64,000 bases of DNA from Piromyces finnis finn. Taxonomy: Eukaryota > Fungi > Neocallimastigomycota. Made by a program: the position numbers and the translations under genes. Of the stretch, positions 40,491-62,400 are shown in pieces. The notes beneath the pieces were generated by a model. It did no database searches, was not told where the DNA came from, and was given only the letters and a program-made list of their open reading frames with translations. The stretch lies in NCBI GenBank assembly GCA_002104945.1, contig MCFH01000087.1, positions 65,308-129,307 of the forward strand. The letters run 5' to 3'. The stretch's first letter is position 1, and each line of letters starts with the position of its first letter.

Positions 40491-40656
40491 AAGCATTAAT
40501 TCCATCAAGTAATAATTCTAATAATGCTACAGATAATAATTCTTCTGGTAATACCACTTCAGATAATGATGCTCATGGTTTAAATTTTATTCTTAAATTA
40601 TTCAACCGTATTTGGGATGGTGACTTCCCCAGCTCATGGAATGAATCCAGTATTGT
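40491..40656 (+). pseudogene. Fragment of LINE family 1 RT region, in opposite orientation to the full copies
   Basis: ALIPSSNNSNNATDNNSSGNTTSDNDAHGLNFILKLFNRIWDGDFPSSWNESSIV matches ORF 43099-45561. Confidence 0.92.
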
Positions 40657-42824
40657 AACTGAAATGATGTACTTATATAGAAGAGGTTCAGGAGTAAAGG
40701 AACAAGAGTTATGAACACCAATGTAAAGTCCTCTCATACCTGGAACTTTAGGATTAGCACGTCTATGTACTGGCTTATAGTTTGGTAGGCATGAGGAGGA
40801 AATTGCATTACCACAGAGGAATTGGCTGTTACCTACTTCTTGAAGACAGACACATACAGGTTTGAAAACAGAGATGAAGTATAAAACACCATCCTTTTTC
40901 TCAGGGTTCCAACCATTGATGTTCCAACAAGTACATAAGTTGAAAAAGGAAGCATTAGAGCTTAAATGATTAAAATAGAAATCGTTAGAGTGGACCAGTA
41001 GTGGATTTGATAGATCGTTTGTTTTTGTATGATCTATTGTTTTTGAGCTTATCAATGAATTTCCAAGATATTTTACTAGAGATTGGGAGTTTTTTAGAAA
41101 GTGAGTGTATAAGTAACATGGCTTTAAGCGGACATTTTCCATTGACTTTTAGAATGAAATAGGTACCGAGTGATTGTGAATATTTTTTGGTGAGGGATTG
41201 AAGAATATCATTGAAAGGTTGAATGTCCTTTAAAAGAAATTCCATTAGTCGTTGTTTTGACCATGAACTAAGATCATGGATAAAATTAGGTATGATTTAT
41301 TGGAGTTAGATCCGAGGAAACGAAGACCACGACGTAAGGTAGGTACAGTACAATTGGTATTGTTCATTTTTGAAAGAACTTATTATGACAATAGATATTA
41401 ATAAATTGAAGTATTGATATATCGATATAAATAAGATAATGAAATAAAAAATATTTAGTAAAATAAAAATAATAATAGCAAAGACGGATATATTATATAG
41501 CTAGTGGATTATTTGTCAAACAATATTTTAAATTTTATAACTGGAAAAGTGGCTAAGTTATTGAAAAACTTAGTTCTAGCTCTACTGAAGATTTTGAATG
41601 GGAAAATAAATTTTGAATATCTATCACTTTGAATTTCTGTGTTATAACTGTATTTTGAAAGTTCTTTATATTTATAAGATTTGTATAATTTGTTGGATGA
41701 TTATTGTATTGTGTTGATTCTGATTGTTGAATTTGAACATTCATTTAGGTTATTTATGTTGTAAGGTAGAGAGATAATAAGAGTGAAAAGTTGTTAAATC
41801 AAAATATAATAGAAAAAGATGAAGAATTTTGGGTAAACATAATAAATATTTTTAAAAAAAATAAAATAGAAACAAAAGTAATATTTATAATATAAAAAAT
41901 AGAATACTCGATTTTCCAGGATTGAAGCTTTGATAACAAAAAATGTTAAAAAAAAAAAAGGGAGTTAACACTTACCATAAGAGTCCATAATAAACTTAAT
42001 AAAATTATACAAATATATAAATATACATATAATATAAAGTATAAAAAACATACATATATATAGAAAAGAGATAGAGAAAGTATATAAAAGAATGTTAGTA
42101 GAAAAGAGATTCTTTGGAAAATCTAGAGTTACAAAAAATAAGAAATAAAAAAGATATTATTAGAATCATATAAAATCATAAAAGAAAAATAAAAAAGCCG
42201 CGCCCCTCGAAAAAATTAAAAATAGAAATAGAAAAATAAAAAGATTAAATAAAGATGATTATAGTAATGAAAGCCGCACCCCACAACGAAACCTCAAGAA
42301 TAAATGAAAGGAATAACAAACTAACTGAGAAAACAAAACTATCTGACTAATCAACATATAGAGAATAAAAAGGAATAAAAGAACAAAGAGAATAAGTAGT
42401 AAACTGGGATAACAAATTATCAATGAAAGCTAAAAATAAAATCAAAAAATATTCAAAATCAGTATTAAATACTACCGAATCAAACAATTTTAAGTTTAAA
42501 ATAATATGTTATTAAGGTTATAAAAAACAACTACTTTAATATAAGTTGAAGGTGTAAGAGAAATATGAAATAACAACTAACACTCAGATTATCAACTCTA
42601 CTCGTTCAGTACCATGAGCTTAGTCCTAATAATATTTCCAAATAAAGACTAACCAAGCATCCATTGCGCAATACTTGGATTTAATTCATTCTACTCTCAG
42701 TACCATGAGCATGAGTAGAGCCCCTTGAGAAACTTCATTTATTAAATAAATGGAGGAAAGTATATATATAAAACTATAATTTTCATATTACCAAATCAAA
42801 TCAAAGCTTTATGCCTTTTTCATA

Positions 42825-42828
<4 letters not shown>
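40651..42828 (-). mobile_element. 5' portion of LINE family 2 with upstream region and repeat X (inverted counterpart of ~59449-61640)
   Basis: Minus-strand ORF pieces 40985-41245 and 40573-41142 match 60921-61937 (WNINGWNPEKKDG APE start, one frameshift). The non-coding upstream DNA also aligns. Confidence 0.9.
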
Positions 42829-42862
<34 letters not shown>

Positions 42863-43098
42863 GGCATCAAATATTTTAAACTTTATTATTAATTTAATTA
42901 AAATTATAATACATGTAATAAAAAATTAAAAATAAAAATAAAAATAAAAAGAATATGTTTAAATAAACACAAATGAATAAAAATTGGGTATAATGTATTC
43001 TAGTAATTTTAATTAAAGTAAAAAAGCCACTATCATACTAAAGTATAATAATTGTATTTGACCTCCAATGGGACACCGAGCCAAAGATCAAAATTTTG

Positions 43099-45561
43099 TC
43101 ATGGAACAAAATTATGATCACCATTGGTTGCGCTGGCCCTCCTGGCCTGTCTTACTGTTTCTTCAGCATTGACGCTCTTGGATGTTGCTTCAAACCTTTT
43201 GAACATTGACCATTGCTGGCCAATAGCAAAAGGCATGATTTTGGTTAGAAGTTCCGCGGTTACCGTCAAGAATGGTGTTCCTTCGTTAGTACCAGATTGA
43301 ATCTGACGCTTACAAAGTTCTTTCCATTCCCTTGAATTGTAATTGATATTGTTAAAACTTCTTCCCCCAAGAAGGAATTTAAATATTTTACTGCACACAC
43401 TAGAATAATCATACACATTAATATTCACCGGATTATTAGAACTATTACTATCATTAACTAAATTACTATCTAAATTAGAATTATTATCTTCACTATTGCT
43501 ATCATTACTAATATTATTATTTCTATTACTACTATTGTTATTATTACTATTGTTATTACTACTATTATTACTATTACTATTAATGTTATTGCTGTCTCTA
43601 CTGATATTAACGTTTTCATTATTATTGATAGGACTATTGGAATTACGTTGACTGAAAAAATTTAGTAGCTGGACTATGGAATCATAATGTTTAATACGGA
43701 TATCTCTAAATGTTGGACAATCTAATAACCAATGTTTAATACTTTGAACACCACACTTGCAACATGGACAGTAGTTAGGACAAACTGGATCAACAAATTT
43801 AGCAGCTTTGGCAACTCTAGCATCCAACTTGTATCCGCTTCTTGCTTTCAATAGCCAGTAGAAGCCATAGGCAAACTCTGGGTATTCATAACATAATTTG
43901 ATAAAATCTTTAGTTTCAATAAATTTATTATCATCATAATATTGCGCTTTGATTGAATTCCCTTTGAGATCTTTCCAATAAAAGTTTTTAACTGCTTTAA
44001 CATCTCCATGTTTCTTTAGTTTTTTATCAAGTGTCCTACTTGATTTGCACCACGTGTATTTTCTAAATTTAGGAATGTAATTGACAAGGTGTGAGATAAT
44101 ACAATTTGAGTTTTTCCATTTGTTAAAACATCTAACCTGAGCTAACGCACATTTGGCTGACAATGGAGGAATATTCAAATCTTTTGAGATAGAGTATAAA
44201 GATATAAACGATACAGCTTTATGAACTCCGGCAACCCATCGTATTCCTTTGTTAACATGCTTCTGAGCAATCCTAGACCTAGCTTTGTTGGATCCAAGTA
44301 ATGGTGCAAAGTATGAAACTCTGCTAATCACTTGAGAGTTAAGTACTAGTTTTTTGAAAGGAATAGGAATATTAGGATTTCTTAAGAATTTACTGACTGA
44401 GAAAAGTCCTTTCAAAACCTTGTTATTAAGAGTTTTAATAACTGGTTTAAGGGATAAATTCTTATCAAATGGAACACCAAGATAAGTATAACAATCAGTA
44501 GTTGGAATGGGTTGTCCTGCTAAGTAAAATGTTGGATCTCTCTTGTTCTGATTTTCTATTGATTCAGGACGAATCACCATCGTTGAACATTTCTGGATAC
44601 CAAATTCCATTTCATTATACAAGGCCCATTCATTAACTCTTCTAAGCATCTTTTTTAAGCATCCTCTTGTTGGAGCACAAATAACTATATCATCTGCAAA
44701 AAGTCCACCACAGCATCGAGTGTCACCTAAACTGACTCCTAGATCTTCGCACTCTCTAAATATATCATTAATAAAGAGATTAAAGAGAATAGGAGAAAGA
44801 GGGCAACCTTGACGGACTCCTTTCTTCACATCAAAAGATTTCGAGAATTGTCCATCTAATTTGACATTAGCCTTAGATGTTAAATATAAATTTTTGATAA
44901 ATTGTAAACTCTTACCTCGGATTCCTAAACAATCTAATTTATGGAGAATATTACCGATTGGGACTGAATCGTATGCTTTCCTGAGATCTAAAAAGGCCAA
45001 ATATGTCTCTTTATTATCTAATTGACGTCTACGGCATATTTCTTGGATTGAAATGAAAAGACTGATACTTTCTTCCTTTTTTCGAAAACTAAATTGTTCA
45101 GGTCTAATGAAATTATTCTTTAAACCATATTCTGAGATTCTAGTGGTGACAATTTTGGAAATCAACTTAATACCATTATTGATAAGTGATATACCTCGAT
45201 AGTTATCACAATCTGTCAAATCTCCCTTCTTAGGAATAGAAACAATACTGGATTCATTCCATGAGTTGGGGAAGTCTCCATCCCAAATACGGTTAAATAA
45301 TTTAAGAATAAAATTTAAACCATGAGCATCATTATCTGAAGTGATATTACCAGAAGAATTATTATCTGTAGCATTATTAGAATCATTACTTGATGGAATT
45401 AATGCTTTGTAAAATTCAATTGGAATACCATCCGGACCCTGATGCTTTATAATTTGGAGTAGAGAGGATAGCTGACTTGACCTCATCAATACTAATATCT
45501 TGGTTGATATCCCACTCATCAAGCATAGGAAGTGAAAAACGTTTATTCGTTGGTTCTTCAT
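43099..45561 (-). CDS. RT and zinc-knuckle part of the LINE1a polyprotein
   Basis: GPDGIP, NYRGISL, FLDLRKAYDSV, GVRQGCPLSPILFN, FADD, CPCC…HWLLDCP. Confidence 0.93.
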   Translation of the reverse strand: MKNQRINVFHFLCLMSGISTKILVLMRSSQLSSLLQIIKHQGPDGIPIEFYKALIPSSNDSNNATDNNSSGNITSDNDAHGLNFILKLFNRIWDGDFPNSWNESSIVSIPKKGDLTDCDNYRGISLINNGIKLISKIVTTRISEYGLKNNFIRPEQFSFRKKEESISLFISIQEICRRRQLDNKETYLAFLDLRKAYDSVPIGNILHKLDCLGIRGKSLQFIKNLYLTSKANVKLDGQFSKSFDVKKGVRQGCPLSPILFNLFINDIFRECEDLGVSLGDTRCCGGLFADDIVICAPTRGCLKKMLRRVNEWALYNEMEFGIQKCSTMVIRPESIENQNKRDPTFYLAGQPIPTTDCYTYLGVPFDKNLSLKPVIKTLNNKVLKGLFSVSKFLRNPNIPIPFKKLVLNSQVISRVSYFAPLLGSNKARSRIAQKHVNKGIRWVAGVHKAVSFISLYSISKDLNIPPLSAKCALAQVRCFNKWKNSNCIISHLVNYIPKFRKYTWCKSSRTLDKKLKKHGDVKAVKNFYWKDLKGNSIKAQYYDDNKFIETKDFIKLCYEYPEFAYGFYWLLKARSGYKLDARVAKAAKFVDPVCPNYCPCCKCGVQSIKHWLLDCPTFRDIRIKHYDSIVQLLNFFSQRNSNSPINNNENVNISRDSNNINSNSNNSSNNNSNNNNSSNRNNNISNDSNSEDNNSNLDSNLVNDSNSSNNPVNINVYDYSSVCSKIFKFLLGGRSFNNINYNSREWKELCKRQIQSGTNEGTPFLTVTAELLTKIMPFAIGQQWSMFKRFEATSKSVNAEETVRQARRASATNGDHNFVP

Positions 45562-47599
45562 ACCAATGCTCTAAATCAAGACTTACACCACTTGGATCTG
45601 ATGCAAGATTTTCGAAATGATCATGCCACACATCTAGTTGTTCTTCCGTAGCAACAACTAATTCTCCGTTTTTGTTTTTAATTGGTTGAGCAATAAAGAA
45701 AGAATCTTTTCCAATTTTTGCAGTTTTCTTGATCCATTTCCAGGCCTTCTTAGGATTATGACTCTTCATATACTCACATCCTGTTTTAATCCAATGAAGA
45801 TATTCTTGCTTCCTAAATTCATTACATCTTTTGTGGATGTAATCAATGAGCTTACGGTAGATTTTAATTCTTTTAATAAATTCATCTATATCATAAATTC
45901 TTTCTTTTTTAAATCTCTTATACAACTTCATTTTGATTTTTTGGAGATTAAAAATTTGTTGTGAAATATGAAATGAAGACTTTATAACATTATTTGCTGA
46001 GGTAATACTGAGCTCGTCTGCAATTGAAAAAGCAGTTGAAGTAAACTCTTTGGAAAGTTCATCTGTAGAAACATTAAGATCGTTGAATTTTGCTGAAAGA
46101 ATTTGGAATTTATTATGACTGAGAATAGATTCCTTTTCCTCAATACATTTTAATCTATTCCATTTCAGAATTTTCTTAGGAACATTAAAGTCATTAGAAA
46201 AATCTTCCATAGGAATAACTTTACCATTAATAAGAAGTGGCTTATGGTCTGATACAGGATAAAAATTATTTATAAATGATCCTGAGTGAATAAGATCTTT
46301 CATCTTCGAATTGATAAGAGCATGGTCAATGTCGGAAGATTGATCACCTCGAGTCCAAGAGATAGTCGACCCTCTAAGCAGAAGAATTTCCCAATCTCCT
46401 AATCCATTAGTTGATAACCAGTTGGATAATTTTACTTTAGACATATTAAAATCACCAACAAGAATCGATGGATGGGATGAATGAGTTTGTAACCACAAGC
46501 GAACTTCTAACTTTGCATGATCAACATAGATGTTGTGATGACTATGAGGCATATAAACATTTCCAATCGAGCATTTGAATCTATTCCAGAGACTAAAAGT
46601 ATAAATAGAAATAATATACTTTCCAGAGAAGTTTTCAAGTGAGGCTTGACACGAATTGTGAAAACCTAAATATAAACCTCTCATTCCCGGAACTGATTCG
46701 TCAGCTTTCTTGAAAAAGTGTCTATAGTTTCGCAAAGTAACACGACAAGGATAATCTGTATTCGAACCAGAACCATTACCAGTTTCTTGGAAACATAAAA
46801 ATAATGGTTTGAAAATAGCTGTGAAATAGCTAATACTATCTCTCTTTTCGTGATTCCACCCATTGGTGTTCCAACTAAGACAAAAAGAAAAGTTATCAGG
46901 CTTGTTGGATGAGGAAGAATCGTTGCTATTATTATTATTATTAAAGTCATCATTATTAATGGATGATGCATCAGAGGAATAAGTAGAACTATTACTAGAT
47001 GGCTGTGAAACTGAAGAACTATCAACTATTGAACTGTTATCAGAGTTGATAGAACTATTAGAATTAATTGTTGAATGTTGAGATTGAAATTGTGTTTGCT
47101 GTAGATCTGGAATATTTTCATGATGGAAAACTTGTTGAAGATCCTGTTGAAGATCTTGTTGAAGATCGGATTGTTGATGAGATTGTTGAACTGATTGTTG
47201 AAATGATTGTTGAATAGAATGTTGATGTTTATTAGAAACTAAAATTTTACGTTTGAGAGTGGAAAAAGTATATTTGTGATTCCTTCTACTACGAGCTGAA
47301 AAGGAAATTGAGGTAACTGAAAGTTTCTTCTTTAATATGTGTAAGATTTTAATACAATCTTTCGATGAACCATGAACCTTGACTAAGAAAAAGTGATCAT
47401 TGAAAGTTTGAAAATATTTAACACTAATAACTGAATTAAATTTATCTTCTAGAATAACCTCGAGTTTTTCCCATAGCATATTTACTGACCATGATCGAAT
47501 ACCACGGATAAAGAAGGAGCGAATATCATCTAAGGGGATACCATAAGACCGGGTACCACGTCTGATATAATTCTTATCTTTAATATAAAGGACTGACAT
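45416..47599 (-). CDS. N-terminal and APE endonuclease part of the LINE1a polyprotein
   Basis: SWNTNG, FQET, VGDFN, IDHAL, SDHKP APE motifs. The frame breaks by 1 nt at KASG|PDG. Confidence 0.92.
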   Translation of the reverse strand: MSVLYIKDKNYIRRGTRSYGIPLDDIRSFFIRGIRSWSVNMLWEKLEVILEDKFNSVISVKYFQTFNDHFFLVKVHGSSKDCIKILHILKKKLSVTSISFSARSRRNHKYTFSTLKRKILVSNKHQHSIQQSFQQSVQQSHQQSDLQQDLQQDLQQVFHHENIPDLQQTQFQSQHSTINSNSSINSDNSSIVDSSSVSQPSSNSSTYSSDASSINNDDFNNNNNSNDSSSSNKPDNFSFCLSWNTNGWNHEKRDSISYFTAIFKPLFLCFQETGNGSGSNTDYPCRVTLRNYRHFFKKADESVPGMRGLYLGFHNSCQASLENFSGKYIISIYTFSLWNRFKCSIGNVYMPHSHHNIYVDHAKLEVRLWLQTHSSHPSILVGDFNMSKVKLSNWLSTNGLGDWEILLLRGSTISWTRGDQSSDIDHALINSKMKDLIHSGSFINNFYPVSDHKPLLINGKVIPMEDFSNDFNVPKKILKWNRLKCIEEKESILSHNKFQILSAKFNDLNVSTDELSKEFTSTAFSIADELSITSANNVIKSSFHISQQIFNLQKIKMKLYKRFKKERIYDIDEFIKRIKIYRKLIDYIHKRCNEFRKQEYLHWIKTGCEYMKSHNPKKAWKWIKKTAKIGKDSFFIAQPIKNKNGELVVATEEQLDVWHDHFENLASDPSGVSLDLEHWYEEPTNKRFSLPMLDEWDINQDISIDEVKSAILSTPNYKASGSGWYSN

Positions 47600-48041
47600 G
47601 ATAATAAATTCTAATTAAAAAATATTGAATATAAAAGAAATACTAATAGAAATTACAAATATAACGTATATGGAAAAAAATCTGTCTCTCTCTCTCTTCT
47701 TAAGTACTGGATAGTACAAAAATTGTTACGATGCTTTGTTTAAAGTTTCTTTTTTTTGAATTCTAGTTGTAAATTTTCTTTAAAAATTCTAATTTTGGTT
47801 TGTTGTTAGTAAATTCGATTCGCTTTTTGACACTAAAATTGTTTGACTTTACTTTTCATTAAATATTTAAATTGGTAAAAAATTTGAATCAAGAATGTCG
47901 ACACCAGAAAGCTTGTGAATAGTATTTTTACATGATGTAGAGTGAATCAGTCTCTTACAAGAAACAATACAACAATAGCTACATGAATATAAAAATACAA
48001 TGCAAATGCTAAAGTTGACTACATTGGATTCTTACAAGAGA

Positions 48042-48099
<58 letters not shown>

Positions 48100-48333
48100 G
48101 GCATCAAATATTTTAAACTTTATTATTAATTTAATTAAAATTATAATACATGAAATATAAAAATTAAAATAAAATAAAAATAAAAAAATATGTTTAAATA
48201 AACACAAATGAATAAAAATTGGGTATAATGTATTCTAGTAATTTTAATTAAAGTAAGAAAGCCACTATCATACTAAAGTATAATAATTGTATTTGACTTC
48301 CAATGGGACACCGAGCCAAAGATCAAAATTTTA

Positions 48334-50823
48334 TCATGGGACAAAATTATGATCTCCATTGGTTGCGCTGGCCCTCCTGGCCTGTCTTACTGTTTCTTCA
48401 GCATTGACGCTCTTGGATGTTGCTTCAAACCTTTTGAACATTGACCATTGCTGGCCAATAGCAAAAGGCATGATTTTGGTTAGAAGTTCCGCGGTTACCG
48501 TCAAGAATGGTGTTCCTTCATTAGTACCAGATTGAATCTGACGCTTACAAAGTTCTTTCCATTCCCTTGAATTGTAATTGATATTGTTAAAACTTCTTCC
48601 CCCAAGAAGGAATTTAAATATTTTACTGCACACACTAGAATAATCATACACATTAATATTCACCGGATTATTAGAACTATTACTATCATTAACTAAATTA
48701 CTATCTAAATTAGAATTATTATCTTCACTATTGCTATCATTACTAATATTATTATTTCTATTATTGTTATTATTACTATTGTTACTATTACTATTGTTAT
48801 TATTACTATTGTTACTATTACTATTAATATTATTACTATCTCTACTGATATTATCAATTTCATTATTATTGATAGGACTATTGGAATTACGTTGACTGAA
48901 AAAATTTAATAGCTGGACTATGGAATCATAATGTTTAATACGGATATCTCTAAATGTTGGACAATCTAATAACCAATGTTTAATACTTTGATCTCCACAC
49001 TTGCAACATGGACAGTAGTTAGGACAAACTGGATCAACAAATTTGGCAGCTTTGGCAACTCTAGCATCCAACTTGTATCCGCTTCTTGCTTTCAATAGCC
49101 AGTAGAAGCCATAGGCAAACTCTGGGTACTCATAACATAATTTAATAAAATCTTTAGTTTCAATAAACTTATTATCATCATAATATTGCGCTTTGATTGA
49201 ATTCCCTTTGAGATCTTTCCAATAAAAGTTTTTAACTGCTTTAACATCTCCATGTTTCTTTAGTTTTTTATCAAGTGTCCTACTTGATTTGCACCACGTG
49301 TATTTTCTAAATTTAGGAATGTAATTGACAAGGTATGAGATAATACAATTTGAGTTTTTCCATTTGTTAAAACATCTAACCTGAGCTAACGCACATTTGG
49401 CTGACAATGGAGGAATATTCAAATCTTTTGAAATAGAGTATAAAGATATAAACGATACAGCTTTATGAACTCCGGCAACCCATCGTATTCCTTTGTTAAC
49501 ATGCTTCTGTGCAATTCTAGACCTGGCTTTGTTGGATCCAAGTAATGGTGCAAAGTATGAAACTCTGCTAATCACTTGTGAGTTAAGTACTAGCTTTTTG
49601 AAGGGAATAGGAATATTAGGATTTCTTAAGAATTTACTGACTGAAAAAAGCCCTTTCAAAACCTTGTTATTAAGAGCTTTAATAACTGGTTTAAGGGACA
49701 GATTCTTATCAAATGGAACACCAAGATAAGTATAACAATCAGTAGTTGGAATGGGTTGTCCTGCTAAGTAAAATGTTGGATCTCTCTTGTTCTGATTTTC
49801 TATTGATTCAGGACGAATCACCATCGTTGAACACTTCTGGATACCAAATTCCATTTCATTATACAAGGCCCATTCATTAACTCTTCTAAGCATCTTTTTT
49901 AAGCATCCTCTTGTTGGAGCACAAATAACTATATCATCTGCAAAAAGTCCACCACAGCATCGAGTGTCACCTAAACTGACTCCGAGATCTTCACACTCTT
50001 TAAATATATCATTAATAAAGAGATTAAAGAGAATAGGAGAAAGAGGGCATCCTTGACGGACTCCTTTCTTCACATCAAAAGATTTCGAGAATTGTCCATC
50101 TAATTTGACATTAGCCTTAGATGTTAAATATAAATTTTTGATGAATTGTAAACTCTTACCTCGGATTCCTAAACAATCTAATTTATGGAGAATATTACCG
50201 ATTGGGACTGAATCGTATGCTTTCCTGAGATCTAAAAAGGCCAAATATGTCTCTTTATTATCTAATTGACGTCTACGGCATATTTCTTGGATTGAAATGA
50301 AAAGACTGATACTTTCTTCCTTTTTTCGAAAACCAAATTGTTCAGGTCTAATGAAATTATTCTTTAGACCATATTCTGAGATTCTAGTGGTGACAATTTT
50401 GGAAATCAACTTAATACCATTATTGATAAGTGATATACCTCGATAGTTATCACAATCTGTCAAATCTCCCTTCTTAGGAATAGAAACAATACTGGATTCA
50501 TTCCATGAGTTGGGGAAGTCTCCATCCCAAATACGGTTGAATAATTTAAGAATAAAATTTAAACCATAAGCATCATTATCTGAAGTGGTATTACCGGAAG
50601 AATTATTATCTGTAGCATTATTAGAATCATTACTTGATGGAATTAATGCTTTGTAAAATTCAATTGGAATACCATCCGGACCCTGATGCTTTATAATTCG
50701 GAGTAGTGAGGATAGCTGACTTGACTTCATCAATACTAATATCTTGGTTGATATCCCATTCATCAAGCATAGGGAGTGAAAAACGTTTATTCGTTGGTTC
50801 TTCATACCAATGCTCCAAATCAA
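48334..50823 (-). CDS. RT and zinc-knuckle part of the LINE1b polyprotein
   Basis: Same RT motifs as copy a, with EQFGFR intact. Confidence 0.93.
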   Translation of the reverse strand: MIWSIGMKNQRINVFHSLCLMNGISTKILVLMKSSQLSSLLRIIKHQGPDGIPIEFYKALIPSSNDSNNATDNNSSGNTTSDNDAYGLNFILKLFNRIWDGDFPNSWNESSIVSIPKKGDLTDCDNYRGISLINNGIKLISKIVTTRISEYGLKNNFIRPEQFGFRKKEESISLFISIQEICRRRQLDNKETYLAFLDLRKAYDSVPIGNILHKLDCLGIRGKSLQFIKNLYLTSKANVKLDGQFSKSFDVKKGVRQGCPLSPILFNLFINDIFKECEDLGVSLGDTRCCGGLFADDIVICAPTRGCLKKMLRRVNEWALYNEMEFGIQKCSTMVIRPESIENQNKRDPTFYLAGQPIPTTDCYTYLGVPFDKNLSLKPVIKALNNKVLKGLFSVSKFLRNPNIPIPFKKLVLNSQVISRVSYFAPLLGSNKARSRIAQKHVNKGIRWVAGVHKAVSFISLYSISKDLNIPPLSAKCALAQVRCFNKWKNSNCIISYLVNYIPKFRKYTWCKSSRTLDKKLKKHGDVKAVKNFYWKDLKGNSIKAQYYDDNKFIETKDFIKLCYEYPEFAYGFYWLLKARSGYKLDARVAKAAKFVDPVCPNYCPCCKCGDQSIKHWLLDCPTFRDIRIKHYDSIVQLLNFFSQRNSNSPINNNEIDNISRDSNNINSNSNNSNNNNSNSNNSNNNNNRNNNISNDSNSEDNNSNLDSNLVNDSNSSNNPVNINVYDYSSVCSKIFKFLLGGRSFNNINYNSREWKELCKRQIQSGTNEGTPFLTVTAELLTKIMPFAIGQQWSMFKRFEATSKSVNAEETVRQARRASATNGDHNFVP

Positions 50824-52855: not shown

Positions 52856-53500
52856 GATAATAAATTCTAATTAAAAAATATTGAATATAAAATAAATACT
52901 AATAAAAATTACAAATATAACGTATATGGAAAAAAATCTGTCTCTCTCTCTCTTCTTAAAAGTACTGGATAGTACAAAAATTGTTACGATGCTTTGTTTA
53001 AAGTTTCTTATTTTTTGAATTCTAGTTGTAAATTTTCTTTAAAAATTCTAGTTTTGGTTTGTTGTTAGTAAATTCGATTCGCTTTTTGACACTAAACTTG
53101 TTTGACTTTACTTTTCATTAAATATTTAAATTGGTAAAAAATTTGAATCAAGAATGTCGACACCAGAAAGCTTGTGAATAGTATTTTTACATGATGTAGA
53201 GTGAATCAGTCTCTTACAAGAAACAATACAACAATAGCTACATGAATATAAAAGTACAATGCAAATGCTAAAGTTGACTACATTGGATTCTTACAAGAGA
53301 AGAGTAGTACTACATGAATACATGAATAAAAGAAAAAATACAGCAACAAAATGTATTACTCTTCTAATTAAATACTATACAAACTTACCTGAAAAATCAA
53401 ACATTCACTTATTCATCAAATACTTAAATTTGATGAATAAAATGTTTTTTAATCGCTCAGTACCATGAGCTTAGTCCTAATAATTTTCCCTTGAAGACTA

Positions 53501-53857
53501 ACCAAGCATCCATTGCGCAATGCTTGGATTTAATTCTTTCTACTCTCTCAGTACCATGAGCATGAGTAGACCCCCTTGAGAAATTACATTTATTAAATAA
53601 ATGAAGGCACATTCCTAAGAGGGCACCAAGCATCCATTGCGCAATACTTGGATTTAATTCTTTCTACTCTCTCAGTACCATGAGCATGAGTAGACCCCCT
53701 TGATAAACTCCATTATTGAATAAATGAAGGCACATTCCTAAGAGGGCACCAAGCATCCATTGCGCAATACTTGGATTTAATTCTTTCTACTCTCTCAGTA
53801 CCATGAGCATGAGTAGACCCCCTTGAGAAACTACATTTATTAAATAAATGAAGGCAC
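53501..53857. repeat. Tandem array of a ~123-bp hairpin-rich unit of repeat X (~2.9 copies)
   Basis: Units start with accaagcatccattgcgcaat at 53501, 53625 and 53748. Confidence 0.93.
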
Positions 53858-54439
53858 GAATACCACGGATAAAGAACTATAATTTTCATATTACCAAATC
53901 AAATCAAAGCTTTATGCCTTTTTCATACCATACACCTAAAAAACGTTCAACCTTCAATCAAATACATAACATTTTAAAAGGAAATTATCATCTTTTTAAC
54001 AACAATACAATTTAAATGAAAAAGGAGTGAAAAAAAAAGAATAACAACCATTTTCTTTAACAACCACAAATCTTTCAATAATAAATAACCTTTTATAAAT
54101 CCCTTAATAATAAGAGGATATTTATTTTTATTTTACAAATTTATTATAATTTTTATTAAACCAATTAAAATTAAGATTTACATTAATTTATATTTAGGTT
54201 TTTTCTTTTTAATTTATGTAGAAATTATTTTATTATTTTCTATAATTTATTAAGTTCTATTTTCTTATCCTATTATTACTATTACATTTTTTTTATTTTA
54301 ATTTTCTTATTTATTATTATCCTCATACAATGAGGACTTTCAATTAAAAAAAAAAAACTTTCAATTAAGGATTGTCGCTTATTATTAGAATATTAACAAT
54401 AATAAACTTTTTCTTTTACTATTTCATTCAATAGTGCGT

Positions 54440-55993
54440 TTAAGCCTTACCAGCCATCTTGGCATCCATTTCTTCAAGAGTAAGACCCTTACATTCAATA
54501 ACGTAGAATTGAGAGTAAATCCAAGCGAGGAAACTGGCAGCAGCAAAAAGAATGAAAGTGTTAGTAGACCATTTCTTCATGAGGAATGGACCAACAAAAC
54601 CAATAATCCAATTGTTTAAGAAGTTAGAGACAGTACCAACAGCAGAACCCTTAACTCTGACACGAAGTGGGAAAACTTCAGCTTGGTAAACCCATGGAAC
54701 TGGACCCCAAGTCCAAGCGAATGAGAATACGAATAAGAAAACGGAAGCAACAGCAGCGTATTGCCATCCCTTGATTGGTTGTTCAATGAACTTACCATTA
54801 GCATCCTTCTTACCACCAGTTAACTTAGAGCAAGCCCAAGTAGAAAGATGGAAGACCATCATCATAAGAGAACCAATAACTAAAAGAGTCTTACGACCTA
54901 ATCTTTCAATACCCCACATACCTGGGAAGGTGGAAACAAAGTTAACGAGGTTGTTGACGTTTGGTAAAACAACAGTAGACATAACCTTGTTGAAACCCAT
55001 TTCAGAGTAAATTTGACTTTGGTAGTACATAATAACGTTAATACCAGTCCATTGTTGGAAAAGTTGCATTAAGAAAGTAATGAAAGTACGACGACGAATG
55101 ACGGAACTGAAAAGTTCACCGAATGAAGAGGAACCAGCAGCACGAGTAGCAGCAACATCTTCTTGAATAGCCTTAAGTTCTTCTTGAACAACAGCATCAG
55201 AAGTAGAGGCGGCATTAAGCTTAGCAAGAATTTCAACAGCTTCTTCATCACGATCCTTAGAACATAACCATCTTGGGGACTTTGGAACGAAGCACATAAG
55301 AGTAGCAAGACCAAGACCTGGAACAACTTGTAATAAAAGAGCTAATCTCCATTCAAGGTTAGAGATTTCTTCATCACCCTTTCTAGTGAAAGAAAGTAAA
55401 CCTTCTGGCTTACGGTTAGTCTTGTACCAGATAAGAGCATTGATAAGAGAAGCAACAATAATACCAAAAGTAGTCATAAGTTGATAACAAGAAGAAAGAG
55501 TACCTCTAAGGTTAGATGGAGCAACTTCTGAAATGTAGGTTGGGCAAAGTACACCATTACAACCAATAGAAAGACCAGTGATAAGACGACCAATGGCAAT
55601 CATAACAGAGGAACGGATAGAAGAACCTTGAATAATAGCACCACAGGTGAAGATACAAGCACCAACCATAATGGTTCTTTGACGACCAAACTTTTCACCA
55701 AGGTAAGTAGCCATAAGAGCACCACAAAGAGCACCAAGAACGAAACTAGAAGTAATAACACCTTCAAGGAAAGCCTTATTACCTTTTTCTTCTAAATCAC
55801 GGTACATAGCCTTTGAGGCATCATCAGTAGATTCACCAACTTCATCAATAGCTTTTCCCTTCCATTCGTGGAATCTGAAGAAAATACGGAATGAGTCCAT
55901 AACAAGAACAACATTCATAACACCAACTTCATAACCAAAAAGAAGACCACCAAGTGAGGCGGTAACAGCGACTAAAAATTGAAAGCTGTTCAT
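54440..55993 (-). CDS. MFS sugar porter (hexose/pentose transporter family), intronless, 517 aa
   Basis: GGLLFGYE, GEKFGRQ, YISEVAP…RG, PKSPRW, QLFQQWTGINVIMYY, ERLGRK, WGPVPWVYQAEVFPLRVR, ECKGLTLEEMD. Strong codon bias (GGT, GCT, AAG, TTC). Confidence 0.96.
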   Translation of the reverse strand: MNSFQFLVAVTASLGGLLFGYEVGVMNVVLVMDSFRIFFRFHEWKGKAIDEVGESTDDASKAMYRDLEEKGNKAFLEGVITSSFVLGALCGALMATYLGEKFGRQRTIMVGACIFTCGAIIQGSSIRSSVMIAIGRLITGLSIGCNGVLCPTYISEVAPSNLRGTLSSCYQLMTTFGIIVASLINALIWYKTNRKPEGLLSFTRKGDEEISNLEWRLALLLQVVPGLGLATLMCFVPKSPRWLCSKDRDEEAVEILAKLNAASTSDAVVQEELKAIQEDVAATRAAGSSSFGELFSSVIRRRTFITFLMQLFQQWTGINVIMYYQSQIYSEMGFNKVMSTVVLPNVNNLVNFVSTFPGMWGIERLGRKTLLVIGSLMMMVFHLSTWACSKLTGGKKDANGKFIEQPIKGWQYAAVASVFLFVFSFAWTWGPVPWVYQAEVFPLRVRVKGSAVGTVSNFLNNWIIGFVGPFLMKKWSTNTFILFAAASFLAWIYSQFYVIECKGLTLEEMDAKMAGKA

Positions 55994-56800
55994 TTTTTTT
56001 TAAAAAAAAAATTAAACTTAAATTAAACTTAAATTAATATTATTATTAAATAATAATGATTTTTTTTTAAAAGAAAATTTATTTCTTTTATACAAAATTT
56101 CAATATAAAGATAAAATCATAATATTTAATTATAATTATATATAATTAATTGTATTTGTATATAAATTATTTTTAAATTAATAATTATTTTCAATTTATT
56201 TTAATATGTTATGATTATTGCTTTATTATATTTATTATATTTATGAATATTAAAATTTAATTTTAATTCTTTCGAGAATTAAAATTAAATATTAAAATAA
56301 ATTATAATATAATATTTTATAAATAGAAATTTTTATAATTAATTAAAATAAATTATTTAAATTTATTATTAACCTTTTTTATTTAAACAATTGAGATGTA
56401 AATTTATTGGTTATTACAATATTAAATATATATTAAAATATTTTCTTTTAATATATATTTAATAATTTAGTGTTTCATTTTAAGAGGATATTTATTATTT
56501 AATAAAAAACTTTATTCAAATTTTAAATTTTGTAAAATATTATAATTTCTTTTATAATTTAAAAAATGTTAAATTATTATTAGTAAATAATAAAAATATA
56601 TTTAATCTTAAAAAAATTAAAAATTCATAAATTTTATGTGTTATTTAAAAAATATTATTTTTATCAATTTATTAAAAATATTTAAAATAAAAGTTAAATT
56701 TATATAATTCCTAATAATTACTAAACTTTAAATATTATAAATTAAAAAATTTTAATAAAAATATAAATTATTATTTTATTAAGTTTATCTTATGATTTTT

Positions 56801-57014
56801 ATAATATAATATAATATAATATAATATAATATAATATAATATAATATAATATAATATAATATAATATAATATAATATAATATAATATAATATAATATAAT
56901 ATAATATAATATAATATAATATAATATAATATAATATAATATAATATAATATAATATAATATAATATAATATAATATAATATAATATAATATAATATAAT
57001 ATAATATAATATAA
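56801..57014. repeat. (ATAAT)n microsatellite, ~42 perfect copies
   Basis: Pure 5-mer array inside the palindrome spacer. Confidence 0.98.
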
Positions 57015-57387
57015 ATTTTGTGTACATTTTTGAAACAAATGTAAAGTTTATTATATAAAAGTTAAATATTATATTATAATTTATTTTAATATTTAATTTT
57101 AATTCTCGAAAGAATTAAAATTAAATTTTAATATTCATAAATATAATAAATATAATAAAGCAATAATCATAACATATTAAAATAAATTGAAAATAATTAT
57201 TAATTTAAAAATAATTTATATACAAATACAATTAATTATATATAATTATAATTAAATATTATGATTTTATCTTTATATTGAAATTTTGTATAAAAGAAAT
57301 AAATTTTCTTTTAAAAAAAAATCATTATTATTTAATAATAATATTAATTTAAGTTTAATTTAAGTTTAATTTTTTTTTTAAAAAAAA

Positions 57388-58941
57388 ATGAACAGCTTTC
57401 AATTTTTAGTCGCTGTTACCGCCTCACTTGGTGGTCTTCTTTTTGGTTATGAAGTTGGTGTTATGAATGTTGTTCTTGTTATGGACTCATTCCGTATTTT
57501 CTTCAGATTCCACGAATGGAAGGGAAAAGCTATTGATGAAGTTGGTGAATCTACTGATGATGCCTCAAAGGCTATGTACCGTGATTTAGAAGAAAAAGGT
57601 AATAAGGCTTTCCTTGAAGGTGTTATTACTTCTAGTTTCGTTCTTGGTGCTCTTTGTGGTGCTCTTATGGCTACTTACCTTGGTGAAAAGTTTGGTCGTC
57701 AAAGAACCATTATGGTTGGTGCTTGTATCTTCACCTGTGGTGCTATTATTCAAGGTTCTTCTATCCGTTCCTCTGTTATGATTGCCATTGGTCGTCTTAT
57801 CACTGGTCTTTCTATTGGTTGTAATGGTGTACTTTGCCCAACCTACATTTCAGAAGTTGCTCCATCTAACCTTAGAGGTACTCTTTCTTCTTGTTATCAA
57901 CTTATGACTACTTTTGGTATTATTGTTGCTTCTCTTATCAATGCTCTTATCTGGTACAAGACTAACCGTAAGCCAGAAGGTTTACTTTCTTTCACTAGAA
58001 AGGGTGATGAAGAAATCTCTAACCTTGAATGGAGATTAGCTCTTTTATTACAAGTTGTTCCAGGTCTTGGTCTTGCTACTCTTATGTGCTTCGTTCCAAA
58101 GTCCCCAAGATGGTTATGTTCTAAGGATCGTGATGAAGAAGCTGTTGAAATTCTTGCTAAGCTTAATGCCGCCTCTACTTCTGATGCTGTTGTTCAAGAA
58201 GAACTTAAGGCTATTCAAGAAGATGTTGCTGCTACTCGTGCTGCTGGTTCCTCTTCATTCGGTGAACTTTTCAGTTCCGTCATTCGTCGTCGTACTTTCA
58301 TTACTTTCTTAATGCAACTTTTCCAACAATGGACTGGTATTAACGTTATTATGTACTACCAAAGTCAAATTTACTCTGAAATGGGTTTCAACAAGGTTAT
58401 GTCTACTGTTGTTTTACCAAACGTCAACAACCTCGTTAACTTTGTTTCCACCTTCCCAGGTATGTGGGGTATTGAAAGATTAGGTCGTAAGACTCTTTTA
58501 GTTATTGGTTCTCTTATGATGATGGTCTTCCATCTTTCTACTTGGGCTTGCTCTAAGTTAACTGGTGGTAAGAAGGATGCTAATGGTAAGTTCATTGAAC
58601 AACCAATCAAGGGATGGCAATACGCTGCTGTTGCTTCCGTTTTCTTATTCGTATTCTCATTCGCTTGGACTTGGGGTCCAGTTCCATGGGTTTACCAAGC
58701 TGAAGTTTTCCCACTTCGTGTCAGAGTTAAGGGTTCTGCTGTTGGTACTGTCTCTAACTTCTTAAACAATTGGATTATTGGTTTTGTTGGTCCATTCCTC
58801 ATGAAGAAATGGTCTACTAACACTTTCATTCTTTTTGCTGCTGCCAGTTTCCTCGCTTGGATTTACTCTCAATTCTACGTTATTGAATGTAAGGGTCTTA
58901 CTCTTGAAGAAATGGATGCCAAGATGGCTGGTAAGGCTTAA
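57388..58941 (+). CDS. MFS sugar porter, identical inverted copy
   Basis: Protein identical to 54440-55993. Confidence 0.96.
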   Translation: MNSFQFLVAVTASLGGLLFGYEVGVMNVVLVMDSFRIFFRFHEWKGKAIDEVGESTDDASKAMYRDLEEKGNKAFLEGVITSSFVLGALCGALMATYLGEKFGRQRTIMVGACIFTCGAIIQGSSIRSSVMIAIGRLITGLSIGCNGVLCPTYISEVAPSNLRGTLSSCYQLMTTFGIIVASLINALIWYKTNRKPEGLLSFTRKGDEEISNLEWRLALLLQVVPGLGLATLMCFVPKSPRWLCSKDRDEEAVEILAKLNAASTSDAVVQEELKAIQEDVAATRAAGSSSFGELFSSVIRRRTFITFLMQLFQQWTGINVIMYYQSQIYSEMGFNKVMSTVVLPNVNNLVNFVSTFPGMWGIERLGRKTLLVIGSLMMMVFHLSTWACSKLTGGKKDANGKFIEQPIKGWQYAAVASVFLFVFSFAWTWGPVPWVYQAEVFPLRVRVKGSAVGTVSNFLNNWIIGFVGPFLMKKWSTNTFILFAAASFLAWIYSQFYVIECKGLTLEEMDAKMAGKA

Positions 58942-59448
58942 ACGCACTATTGAATGAAATAGTAAAAGAAAAAGTTTATTATTGTTAATATTCTAATAAT
59001 AAGCGACAATCCTTAATTGAAAGTTTTTTTTTTTAATTGAAAGTCCTCATTGTATGAGGATAATAATAAATAAGAAAATTAAAATAAAAAAAATGTAATA
59101 GTAATAATAGGATAAGAAAATAGAACTTAATAAATTATAGAAAATAATAAAATAATTTCTACATAAATTAAAAAGAAAAAACCTAAATATAAATTAATGT
59201 AAATCTTAATTTTAATTGGTTTAATAAAAATTATAATAAATTTGTAAAATAAAAATAAATATCCTCTTATTATTAAGGGATTTATAAAAGGTTATTTATT
59301 ATTGAAAGATTTGTGGTTGTTAAAGAAAATGGTTGTTATTCTTTTTTTTTCACTCCTTTTTCATTTAAATTGTATTGTTGTTAAAAAGATGATAATTTCC
59401 TTTTAAAATGTTATGTATTTGATTGAAGGTTGAACGTTTTTTAGGTGT

Positions 59449-62400
59449 ATGGTATGAAAAAGGCATAAAGCTTTGATTTGATTTGGTAATATGAAAATTA
59501 TAGTTCTTTATCCGTGGTATTCGTGCCTTCATTTATTTAATAAATGTAGTTTCTCAAGGGGGTCTACTCATGCTCATGGTACTGAGAGAGTAGAAAGAAT
59601 TAAATCCAAGTATTGCGCAATGGATACTTGGTTAGTCTTTATTTGGAAATATTATTAGGACTAAGCTCATGGTACTGAGCGAACAGAGTTGATAATTTGA
59701 GTGTTAGTTGTTATATCATATATCCCTTACACCTTCAACTTATTTTTTAGATAGTAGTTGCTTTAACAACTTTTATAACATATTATTTTAAACTTAAAAT
59801 TGTTTGATTCGGTAGTATTAAATACTGATTTTGAATATTTCTTGATTTCATTTTTATTTTAGCTTTCATCGATAATTTGTTATCCCAGTTTACTACTTAT
59901 TCTCTTTGTTCTTTTATTCCTTTTTTATTCTTTATATGTTGATTAGTCAGATAGTTTTGTTTTTTCAGTTAGTTGGTTATTCCTTTCATTTATTCTTGAG
60001 TTTCGTGTGGGGTGCAGCTTTCATTACTATAATCATATTTAATCTTTTATTTTTTCTATTTTTATTATTTACGAGGGGCGCGGCTTTTTTTTATTTTTCC
60101 TTTATGATTTTATATGATTCTAGTAATATCTTTTTTTATTTCTTATTTTTTTGTAACTCTAGATTTTCCAAGGAATCTCTTTTCTACTAACATTCTTTTG
60201 TATACTTTTTCTATCTCTTTTCTATATATATATATTTCTTATACTTTATATTATATGTATATTTATATATCTGTATAACTTAATTAGGTTTATTATGGAC
60301 TATTATGGTAAGTATTAACACCTTTTTTTCTTTAACATTTCTATTATCAAAGCTTCTATCCTGGAAAATCGAGTATTCTATTTTTATATTGTAAATACTA
60401 CTCTTGTTTCAATTTTATCTTTAAAAAAAAAAAAAAAAAAAAAATTTTATTATGTTTACCCAAAATTCTTCAACTTTTTTCCATTATTTTTGTTATAACA
60501 ACTTTTCACTCTTATTATCTCTCTACCTTACAACATAAACAACCTATATGAATGTTCAATTTCAACAATCAGAATCAACACAATACAATAATCATCCAAT
60601 AAATTATACAATTCTTATTAATATAAAGAGCTTTCAAAATACAGTTATAATACAGAAATCCAAAGTGATAGATATTCAAAATTTATCTTCCCGTTTAAAG
60701 TCTTCAGTAGAGTTAGAACTAAGTTTGTCAACAACTTAGCCACTTTTCCAGTTATAAATTTAAAATATTGTTTGACAAATAATCCACTTGCTATATAATA
60801 TATCCGTCTTTACTATTATTATTTTTATTTTACTATATATTTTATTTCATTATCTTATTTATATCATTATATCAATACTTCAAACTATTAATATCTATTG
60901 TCATAATAAGTTCTTTCAAAATGAACAATACCAATTGTACTGTACCTACCTTACGACGTGGTCTTCGTTTCTTCGGATCTAACTCCAATAAATCATATCT
61001 AATTTTTATCCATGATCTTAGTTCATGGTCAAAACAACGACTAATGGAATTTCTTTTAAAGGACATTCAACCTTTCAATGATATTCTTCAATCCCTCACC
61101 AAAAAATATTCACAATCACTCGGTATCTATTTCATTCTTAAAGTCAATGGAAAATGTCCGCTTAAAGCCATGTTACTTATACACTCACTTTCTGAAAAAC
61201 TCCCAATCTCTAGTAAAATATCTTGGAAATTCATTGATAAGCTCAAAAACAATAGATCATACAAAAACAAACGATCTATCAAATCTACTACTGGTCCACT
61301 CTCTGACGATTTCTATTTTAGTCATCTAAGCTCTAATGCTTCCTTTTTCAACTTATGTACTTGTTGGAACATCAATGGTTGGAACCCGGAGAAAAAGGAC
61401 GGTGTTTTATACTTCATCTCTGTTTTCAAACCTGTATGTGTCTGTCTTCAAGAAGTAGGTAACAGCCAATTCCTCTGTGGTAATGCAATTTCCTCCCCAT
61501 GCCTACTGAACTATAAACCAGTACACAGACGTGCTAATCCTAAAGTTCCAGGTATGAGAGGACTTTACATTGGTGTTCATAATTCTTGTTCCTTTACTCC
61601 TGAACCTCTTCTATATAAGTACATCATTTCAGTTACAATATTGTCATTTTGGAACCAGAGATGTACCATTGGTAATATTTACTTCCCGCAAACTAGATGG
61701 CCGGATGCTAGATTAATTGCCTTTGATGAACTTGATAAGTGGTTAACAACGCATAACAAATTCAACCACCCAGCTATCCTTGTAGGAGACTTTAATATGT
61801 CAGCTATTAAAATCAAATCTTATATATCACAACACTTCCCGGATTGGACTATGGCTGAGTTAACTGGTAATAATTTACCTGGGAAAAAGGATCTAAATCT
61901 TCATGCATTGATCATATTATATACAACAAAGCTATGACAGAACACATAAACAAATCTTCAGTTTGTGAAGTTTTCCACGATGTTTCTGATCACAAACCGA
62001 TCCTTGTGTCTTGTAAAAAAGACTCTTCGGATGATTTCAAAAAGCCTAAGAAGACCTTTAAGTGGTCAAGTCATATCTGTAACACAAAGTGTTCTGACAT
62101 TCTTACTAGTAATCGCTTTGCTGTTCTAGCTTCCGAGCTTGAAGCTAATTGCGATAGCCTTTCGGCTGACGATATGGTTTCAAGATTTTTAGATACTTCC
62201 AAAACTATAGGTAAAGAAATAAAAGCCATTGTGCCTGCAGATTTAAAAGGTCCAGCATTCCATTGCCCTCAATACATCAAAAACTTATCACATGAAAAAC
62301 ACCTGGCTTACAAAAATATTAAGCCCCTTTCAGATTGCGCTGACATGGAAAATTATCTTAACCAGTTCTCCATATACCAAAATCTATGTAATACCATCAA

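Follow-up and report, generated by a model that had tools for sequence, protein, structure and literature searches.

Does the inverted repeat around a pair of sugar-transporter genes in the anaerobic gut fungus Piromyces finnis represent one old palindrome with decaying outer arms, or do its outer and inner parts have different origins? The question is raised by a 64,000-nt stretch of contig C219 (C219:65308-129307, called the window below; C219 is 129,307 bp long and window position 64000 is the contig end). The window contains a small palindrome, P1, with two divergent major facilitator superfamily (MFS) sugar-transporter genes, and copies of two families of long interspersed nuclear elements (LINEs), LINE1 and LINE2, on both sides of it. 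Based on searches of the whole 56.5-Mb genome (232 contigs), we favour, with a probability of roughly 70%, a history in which an old inverted transporter pair received independent LINE insertions, followed by right-to-left transfer of sequence and recurrent homogenisation of the arms. The outer inverted repeat is made of ordinary LINE copies, one old and one very young, and the inner palindrome has the features of a long-lived structure.

The features of the palindrome are as follows (window positions, strand, description).

53748-56317, minus strand: left palindrome arm; its outer 129 bp are read as copied from the right arm.
54440-55993, minus strand: left MFS sugar transporter, 517 amino acids (Pfam Sugar_tr, 3e-115).
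56318-57063, no strand: AT-rich spacer of 746 bp, with a (TATAA)n array at 56800-57014.
57064-59632, plus strand: right palindrome arm, read as the source of the outer 129 bp.
57388-58941, plus strand: right MFS sugar transporter, 517 amino acids; its DNA equals the left copy, with 0 differences in 1554 bp.
42772-42828, no strand: 57-bp block, 100% identical to 53875-53931 and to its mirror 59449-59505.

Each arm carries one intact transporter open reading frame (ORF), and the two ORFs point apart. The only differences between the arms over 2570 bp are a mismatch (53754/59626) and a 1-nt indel in a homopolymer, so that identity exceeds 99% around a non-palindromic spacer.

Outside these arms, BLAST of the window against itself pairs 40651-42828 with 61640-59449 on the minus strand at 92.4% identity over 2216 columns, within the ~90-95% given by a first-pass annotation of the window; a repeat search splits the same outer match into blocks of 74-99%. 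That annotation had taken the outer stretches for drifted arms of one older inverted duplication. It turned out that both are dispersed LINE2 copies of different ages, named LINE2-A (the left outer copy) and LINE2-C (the right one). The LINE features of the window are listed below.

40491-40656, plus strand: LINE1 fragment abutting the broken 3' end of LINE2-A; reverse complement of 45242-45407 at 97%.
40651-42756, minus strand: LINE2-A, the 5' part of an old, 3'-truncated LINE2 with one monomer (42652-42756), 92-93% identical to other copies.
42757-42771, no strand: junction of ~13-15 bp from LINE2-A to the 57-bp block, with no other occurrence in the genome.
42829-48046, minus strand: LINE1 copy 1, 5'-truncated, with poly(A) at 42829-42866, inserted in or at the poly(A) of copy 2.
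48047-53857, minus strand: LINE1 copy 2, full length, with poly(A) at 48047-48097, 5' untranslated region (5'UTR) at 53306-53460 and three 110-bp monomers.
59504-59522, plus strand: first 17-19 nt of LINE1-D, the LINE1 fragment that hosts LINE2-C; the target-site duplication (TSD) of LINE2-C has its 5' copy in the final 12-13 nt, (A)TCCGTGGTATTC.
59523-64000, plus strand: LINE2-C, a young full-length LINE2 with one monomer (59523-59632), running off the contig end.

The outer inverted match is far above chance, yet it is not particular to this pair. At least 50 other genomic places match the left stretch 40651-42828 at 92-93%, and the left copy has at least 54 LINE2 matches in the genome at 87-96%, of which the near-full-length ones are mostly at 91-93%. 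The right copy, at 92%, is no closer to the left copy than other LINE2 matches are. The body of LINE2-C is 96-99.6% identical to more than 20 dispersed copies, but only 92.5% identical to LINE2-A. Substitutions were counted on a 1.95-kb segment of the LINE2 5' part. LINE2-C differs from five dispersed copies (L019, L012, L013, L018 and L016) by 0.20-0.46%, while LINE2-A and LINE2-C differ by ~5.3% (substitutions only), so the two outer stretches are not each other's closest relatives. LINE2-A lies 4.67% from the family majority (the column-majority reference of the segment) and is grouped in a tree with the old copies L025 and L027-L029 (support 0.997), not with LINE2-C. If A and C had a common origin, LINE2-C would be expected at about half of the A-C divergence (at least ~2.5%) from every other copy, which is not observed; the closeness of LINE2-C to dispersed copies therefore indicates that A and C do not come from one duplicated insertion. 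Hypermutation resembling repeat-induced point mutation was considered for the divergence of LINE2-A and rejected, as its spectrum is unskewed (36 C>T/G>A, 21 A>G/T>C and 33 transversions). LINE2-A breaks off at the LINE2 position equivalent to 61643. Three different rearrangement breakpoints of old LINE2 copies fall within 25 bp in LINE2-equivalent positions: 61643 in LINE2-A (window 40648-40656), and 61635 and 61660 in the right and left arms of a paralogous palindrome, P2, described below.

The right copy can be followed as an insertion in its own right. We read the sequence outward on redundant contigs, up to C20:30000 and C151:10000. In contig C20, LINE2-C is 5.78 kb at full length and ends in a 31-nt poly(A), which is followed by TCCGTGGTATTC and then GATCATGGTCAG. 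Its 5' flank, in the window as well as in C20, reads ...ATTATAG, then TTCTTTATCCGTGGTATTC, then the first monomer, and both LINE1 copies of the window contain the joined string TTCTTTATCCGTGGTATTCGATCATGGTCAG without interruption as part of their coding sequence. LINE2-C is a complete insertion by target-primed reverse transcription with a TSD of 12-13 bp. It entered LINE1-D 17-19 nt from the start, and the rest of LINE1-D resumes past the poly(A) of LINE2-C (C20:26981-28667), a remainder of 1.7 kb that is 5.8% diverged from young LINE1. We surveyed 1.24 kb upstream of 30 LINE2 copies, and the monomer stands at -159..-50 from the LINE2 body in 24 of them; since the order of monomer, ~50 bp and body is standard for LINE2, 59523-59700 is the intact 5' end of the element. 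The right arm, described earlier as a conversion mosaic, therefore ends in an ordinary LINE2 5' end, and the mosaic lies in the left arm. With different ages, and with a poly(A) and TSD of its own for LINE2-C within a LINE1 fragment, LINE2-A and LINE2-C are independent insertions.

It is hardly credible, then, that LINE2-A and LINE2-C are the outer arms of one older and larger inverted duplication which drifted to 92% after the LINE1 insertion had ended conversion between them. Such a duplication would account for a real 2.2-kb inverted match at mirror positions, for the piece of arm flank (57 bp) beside LINE2-A, and for the start of A and C within ~6 bp of each other relative to that block. 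It would not account for a LINE2-C that is only 0.2-0.5% from dispersed copies where at least ~2.5% is expected, for the LINE2-C TSD inside LINE1-D, or for the grouping of LINE2-A with old copies instead of C; besides, the LINE2-A junction is unique in the genome and the DNA past LINE1-D is unrelated.

The mirror positions of the LINEs can be explained by the genes, since the transporter genes themselves are mirror images. At the transporter loci, five LINE junctions (the LINE1 pair, LINE1-D, LINE2-A, LINE2-C and a LINE2 fragment of P2) lie 505-583 bp past the transporter stop, all co-oriented with the gene. The same habit is seen in the flank survey. About two fifths of the LINE2 copies (12-13 of 30) immediately follow the 3' end of a LINE1 in the same orientation, another five loci are 442-654 bp past the stop of a host gene oriented likewise (Sugar_tr, ABC_tran, Aldo_ket_red, CAT and CEP76_C), and two copies are behind unidentified long ORFs; no long antisense ORF was found in the 1.24 kb upstream of any of the 30 copies. 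LINEs here usually land ~0.45-0.65 kb behind a co-oriented ORF, and a divergent gene pair therefore gathers mirrored LINEs without any duplication of the LINEs. LINEs behind co-oriented genes can mimic "older arms" around any divergent gene pair, which calls for caution with other inverted repeats in this genome.

The extent of the original arms is indicated by the 57-bp block. It occurs at seven genomic places, all in the transporter locus family, and is absent from other LINE2 copies; it is therefore part of the transporter 3' flank (the flank is called F below) and not of LINE2. The outer block stands directly before the poly(A) of LINE1 copy 1 and the other window copies lie within the arms, so that the block is present on both sides of the LINE1 pair. 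The earlier statements that the LINE1 pair (42828-48046 and 48065-53305; 98% identical) separates the left copy from the palindrome, and that LINE2-A adjoined the left arm before this pair arrived, hold, with the block at 42772-42828 being a piece of arm flank. The first-pass annotation would have given up its palindrome if the 57-bp block, a unit it called X and the upstream region formed the normal 5' end of LINE2 and both outer copies had TSDs of their own. X and the 5'UTR do belong to the LINE2 5' end and LINE2-C does have its TSD, but the 57-bp block is locus flank. We also considered the block as a TSD of the LINE1 pair, which was dropped; what had looked like a "20-nt filler" is LINE1-D sequence with the LINE2-C TSD. 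Beyond the distal end of the block, the left side continues with 13 unique bp and LINE2-A and the right side with LINE1-D, and from these sequences the distal end of the block appears to be the old arm boundary.

A different boundary would apply if the older palindrome already held LINE2-A, its right twin A' having been lost or lying farther out, and LINE2-C were an unrelated later insertion. The left arm did once run from the 57-bp block through 13 bp into LINE2-A, and the LINE1 fragment next to the right block could have displaced such a continuation. We regard this as quite improbable, however, as no mirrored twin of LINE2-A, nor any second A-type copy, is present among the matches listed on C20 or near the start of C151, the LINE2-A junction has no second copy genome-wide at up to 3 mismatches, and the end of LINE1-D at C20:28667 is followed by 1.3 kb of unrelated AT-rich DNA.

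Between the present arm end and the old boundary lies the evidence for a transfer, which depends on monomers shared by the two LINE families. LINE1 copy 2 has monomers at 53501-53610, 53625-53733 and 53748-53857. Its segment 53306-53460 has at least 40 genomic copies at 100%, each followed by monomers at fixed spacing; this segment is the LINE1's own 5'UTR, and the array 53501-53857 therefore belongs to LINE1 copy 2. The bodies of LINE1 and LINE2 are only ~60% identical, but they have the 110-bp monomer and ~50 bp beside it in common. A 14-bp spacer separates the units, some of which are half-units, and 1-5 units are found per element genome-wide (1-2 in LINE2 copies; 2-5, including half-units, in LINE1 copies). 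The common monomer looks like an exchanged 5' promoter module. Both families have features of LINEs with an apurinic/apyrimidinic endonuclease (APE), namely endonuclease and reverse transcriptase ORFs, poly(A), TSD and many dispersed copies. In Pfam, LINE1 matches RVT_1 (2.9e-35) and Exo_endo_phos (3.5e-6) and LINE2 matches Exo_endo_phos (2.6e-7), while the reverse transcriptase region of LINE2 is recognised by ~60% DNA identity to LINE1, with no separate scan.

The outer 129 bp of the left arm consist of the monomer 53748-53857 and 17-19 nt of LINE1-D (53858-53876). Nucleotides of LINE1-D, a copy of the LINE2-C TSD and the LINE2-C monomer are thus found in the left arm, and they must therefore have originated on the right and been copied right-to-left after LINE2-C had inserted. 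This is a directional transfer of arm-specific sequence. Direct reading confirms the matches from which the first-pass annotation had started: 59523-59632 equals the unit 53748-53857 except for the single mismatch 53754/59626, and 59633-59680 equals the string at 42608-42652 of the left copy and is unlike 53470-53500. The step in identity that it described at a hairpin is likewise found, as arm identity stops at 53748/59632, a few bases from ATTGCGCAAT. From the order of these pieces, the left arm reads as a mosaic in which a right-derived outer piece is fused to the monomer array of LINE1 copy 2. The resolution point of the transfer would lie within the shared monomer (53755 to 53857), and the inner 57-bp block probably came in with it from the right arm. 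Arm identity stops at this point because LINE1 and LINE2 differ beyond the monomer, not because a tract happened to end there by chance.

An outer junction inside a monomer common to inverted LINE1 and LINE2 copies, and 2570 bp without substitutions save one at the very end, would also be expected if the arms were simply young, made by one recent inverted duplication through template switching between the inverted monomers, with no ongoing conversion. This is improbable. The isolated 57-bp block beside LINE2-A places arm flank on the left before the LINE1 pair arrived, and the comparison with P2 gives two further objections: the centre, with both inner junctions and the spacer, is common to P2 at a spacer divergence of 3.65%, so that the palindrome predates LINE2-C, and the arms of P2 are near-identical too, with at least 26 P2-specific flank variants present in both.

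P2 contains the same gene pair, with the minus-strand copy at the end of contig C195 (C195:287221-291490) and the plus-strand copy at C163:1-4198, and the two contig ends overlap in an expanded spacer array of the (TATAA)n type. The centre of P2 is colinear with that of P1 across both inner junctions, and the palindrome is therefore older than the duplication of the locus. The differences between and within the two palindromes are as follows.

Spacer: 27/739 substitutions (3.65%) between P1 and P2.
3' flank F: 52-55/495 between P1 and P2; 0/507 within P1; 6/516 within P2, all in one CT-rich run.
Promoter: 1/324 between P1 and P2; 0/324 within P1; 0/324 within P2.
Coding sequence: 1/1554 between P1 and P2; 0/1554 within P1; 0/1554 within P2.

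The 3' flank differs by ~5-11% between the loci and by 0-1.2% between the arms of each palindrome; BLAST of F up to 59427 gives 26 mismatches plus indels between P1 and P2. At least 26 P2-specific flank variants are common to both P2 arms. Variants that distinguish the loci are thus present in both arms of each palindrome, which is concerted evolution, and it is by locus-specific variants common to both arms that arm-to-arm conversion is classically recognised. The earlier idea of a long-lived palindrome homogenised from arm to arm is supported by this comparison and by the right-to-left transfer, while the outer-arm evidence offered for it is refuted. The near-identical coding sequences of P1 and P2 suggest exchange between the loci as well as selection.

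Several other observations were made on P2. Its arms include a 291-bp internal fragment of LINE2. Remnants of the 19 nt of LINE1-D and of the monomer were looked for in P2 and none were seen. The (TATAA)n array of the P1 spacer is perfect, with ~43 units near the right arm; at P2 and C151, the sites of contig breaks, it is much expanded, to ~0.7-1 kb. The spacer of P2 and C151 is flipped relative to P1; we did not count it as evidence of a crossover, as P2 lacks an orthologous outer flank by which to orient it and C151 may begin with a chimeric join. A LINE1 pair at P2 was rejected as a common ancestral marker, as it is 97.3-97.4% identical to both window copies and so not made of their orthologues.

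The locus lies at a contig end, and the redundant contigs were compared with it. Over 11.7 kb, C20 (38.7 kb) matches the window without a substitution and differs from it in 1-nt indels only. C20:1-9771 is the reverse complement of 48050-57861 and C20:13958-25683 corresponds to 52233-64000; C20 is probably a redundant, partly folded-back contig. Eight of its 1-nt indels are also in C151, and these errors may sit in the end of C219. The start of C151 (C151:1-5900) has P2-type arms and centre up to window-equivalent 59380, and then P1-type flank and LINE2-C without real substitutions. This contig start represents a third locus with conversion between loci or else a chimeric join at the end of the P1/P2 homology.

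Could the perfect arms, or the whole arrangement, have come from a collapsed or chimeric long-read assembly and its polishing? The window does stop where its contig stops, LINE2-C is assembled again in C20 and at the start of C151 with only 1-nt indels, the first 5.85 kb of C151 resemble a P2/P1 chimera, and C20 resembles a fold-back. An asymmetric spacer of 746 bp, however, is unlike a missed-adapter fold-back, and the outer flanks of P1 are unique and unlike each other. Besides, the P2 arms are on different large contigs and have all P2-specific variants in common; polishing is therefore not the cause of their likeness. We consider an artefact of this kind very improbable.

The history that we favour would run as follows. 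Each original arm would have been ~2.44 kb long, beginning at the 746-bp spacer and finishing where the 57-bp block ends. On the left, the old LINE2-A stands next to the former arm end (in the simplest history: gene, flank F, 57-bp block, 13 bp and LINE2-A), and the LINE1 pair, younger than LINE2-A, later entered 57 bp from that end, at the boundary between F and the block. The right arm adjoins the old LINE1-D, into which the very young LINE2-C inserted by target-primed reverse transcription. LINEs have landed repeatedly ~0.5-0.6 kb behind each transporter, always in the same direction as the gene. These insertions are shown by the sequence, and the later steps are inferred. After LINE2-C, repair or conversion would have copied the right arm outward into the left (flank, 57-bp block, LINE1-D piece and first LINE2-C monomer), resolving in the left LINE1 monomers, identical because LINE1 and LINE2 have the same 5' monomer. 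This transfer would have restored the inner 57-bp block and added the LINE1-D piece and the monomer, so that the identical arms grew to 2570 bp. Arm-to-arm transfer would be recurrent, with the arms kept identical since before the locus duplication.

Several points weigh against this history. Measured from the 57-bp block, LINE2-A starts 13 bp and LINE2-C 19 bp out, only ~6 bp from one another, which for independent insertions is a tight coincidence unless the targeting is precise. The junction of the 57-bp block with LINE1-D could be a rearrangement breakpoint, LINE1-D being only a 1.7-kb fragment. One large recent re-copying looks the same as many small conversions. The 3' part of LINE2-A is gone with the truncation, and with it the end at which a TSD of its own would show. 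The locus is at a contig end where redundant contigs disagree (the start of C151 is P2-type and then P1-type), and the picture rests partly on an imperfect assembly.

On balance we lean towards classifying P1 as a small autosomal palindrome of two divergent sugar-transporter genes, long-lived and kept identical by recurrent arm-to-arm conversion, with a directional LINE footprint, namely that a TSD-bearing flank and first promoter monomer were copied and the tract ends in monomers of two LINE families. A palindrome in the style of the Y chromosome with decaying outer arms is not documented here, as the outer arms are two transposon copies of different age. What the locus offers is evidence, from the P2 comparison and the right-to-left transfer, that a small gene palindrome evolves in concert in a member of the Neocallimastigomycota, together with a common 5' monomer of two LINE families that supplies homology where arm identity ends. 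A literature search found no paper on palindromes or LINEs in Neocallimastigomycota, nor on concerted evolution of palindromes in this group. If true, the locus would make a compact system in which to study how palindromes are maintained and how retroelements are targeted (LINEs ~0.5 kb behind co-oriented ORFs) in early-diverging fungi.

Each part of the locus has a counterpart among known systems. APE-type LINEs insert by target-primed reverse transcription and form nested and head-to-tail arrays. The LINEs of the window resemble them in their endonuclease and reverse transcriptase ORFs, poly(A), 12-13-bp TSD and occasional 5' truncation, in insertion into the poly(A) of older LINEs and in dispersed copies of graded age, and there is no essential difference. 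Mouse L1 families have monomeric tandem-repeat 5'UTR promoters. LINE1 and LINE2 are similar in that their 5' end carries tandem units in varying numbers (1-5), each ~110 bp plus 14 bp, half-units included, and in that the same monomer stands on two LINE lineages with ~60% identical bodies, as if a 5' module had been exchanged; the fungal monomers are shorter and the host is a fungus. In human genomic disorders, the duplication-triplication/inverted-duplication (DUP-TRP/INV-DUP) rearrangements arise by template switching mediated by inverted repeats. P1 resembles these in that its junction lies inside an inverted repeat pair (the LINE monomers) and the DNA between was copied inverted, but the P1 palindrome pre-existed, so that the event would be gap repair or conversion between arms and not a first duplication.

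The closest comparison is with the palindromes of primate and mouse sex chromosomes, which are maintained by arm-to-arm gene conversion (e.g. PMC8600007, PMC8327919 and bioRxiv 10.1101/800185). P1 is like them in its inverted gene-bearing arms around a unique spacer, in an arm identity far above the divergence from a related palindrome copy, and in the concerted evolution by intrachromosomal conversion that would follow. Where the sex-chromosome palindromes have arms of 10 kb to 1.5 Mb, those of P1 are 2.4-2.6 kb; P1 lies in an anaerobic gut fungus and not on a sex chromosome, and it was compared with a paralogous locus of its own genome instead of with other species. P1 also differs in that its outer arm end is set by the homology of LINE promoter monomers.

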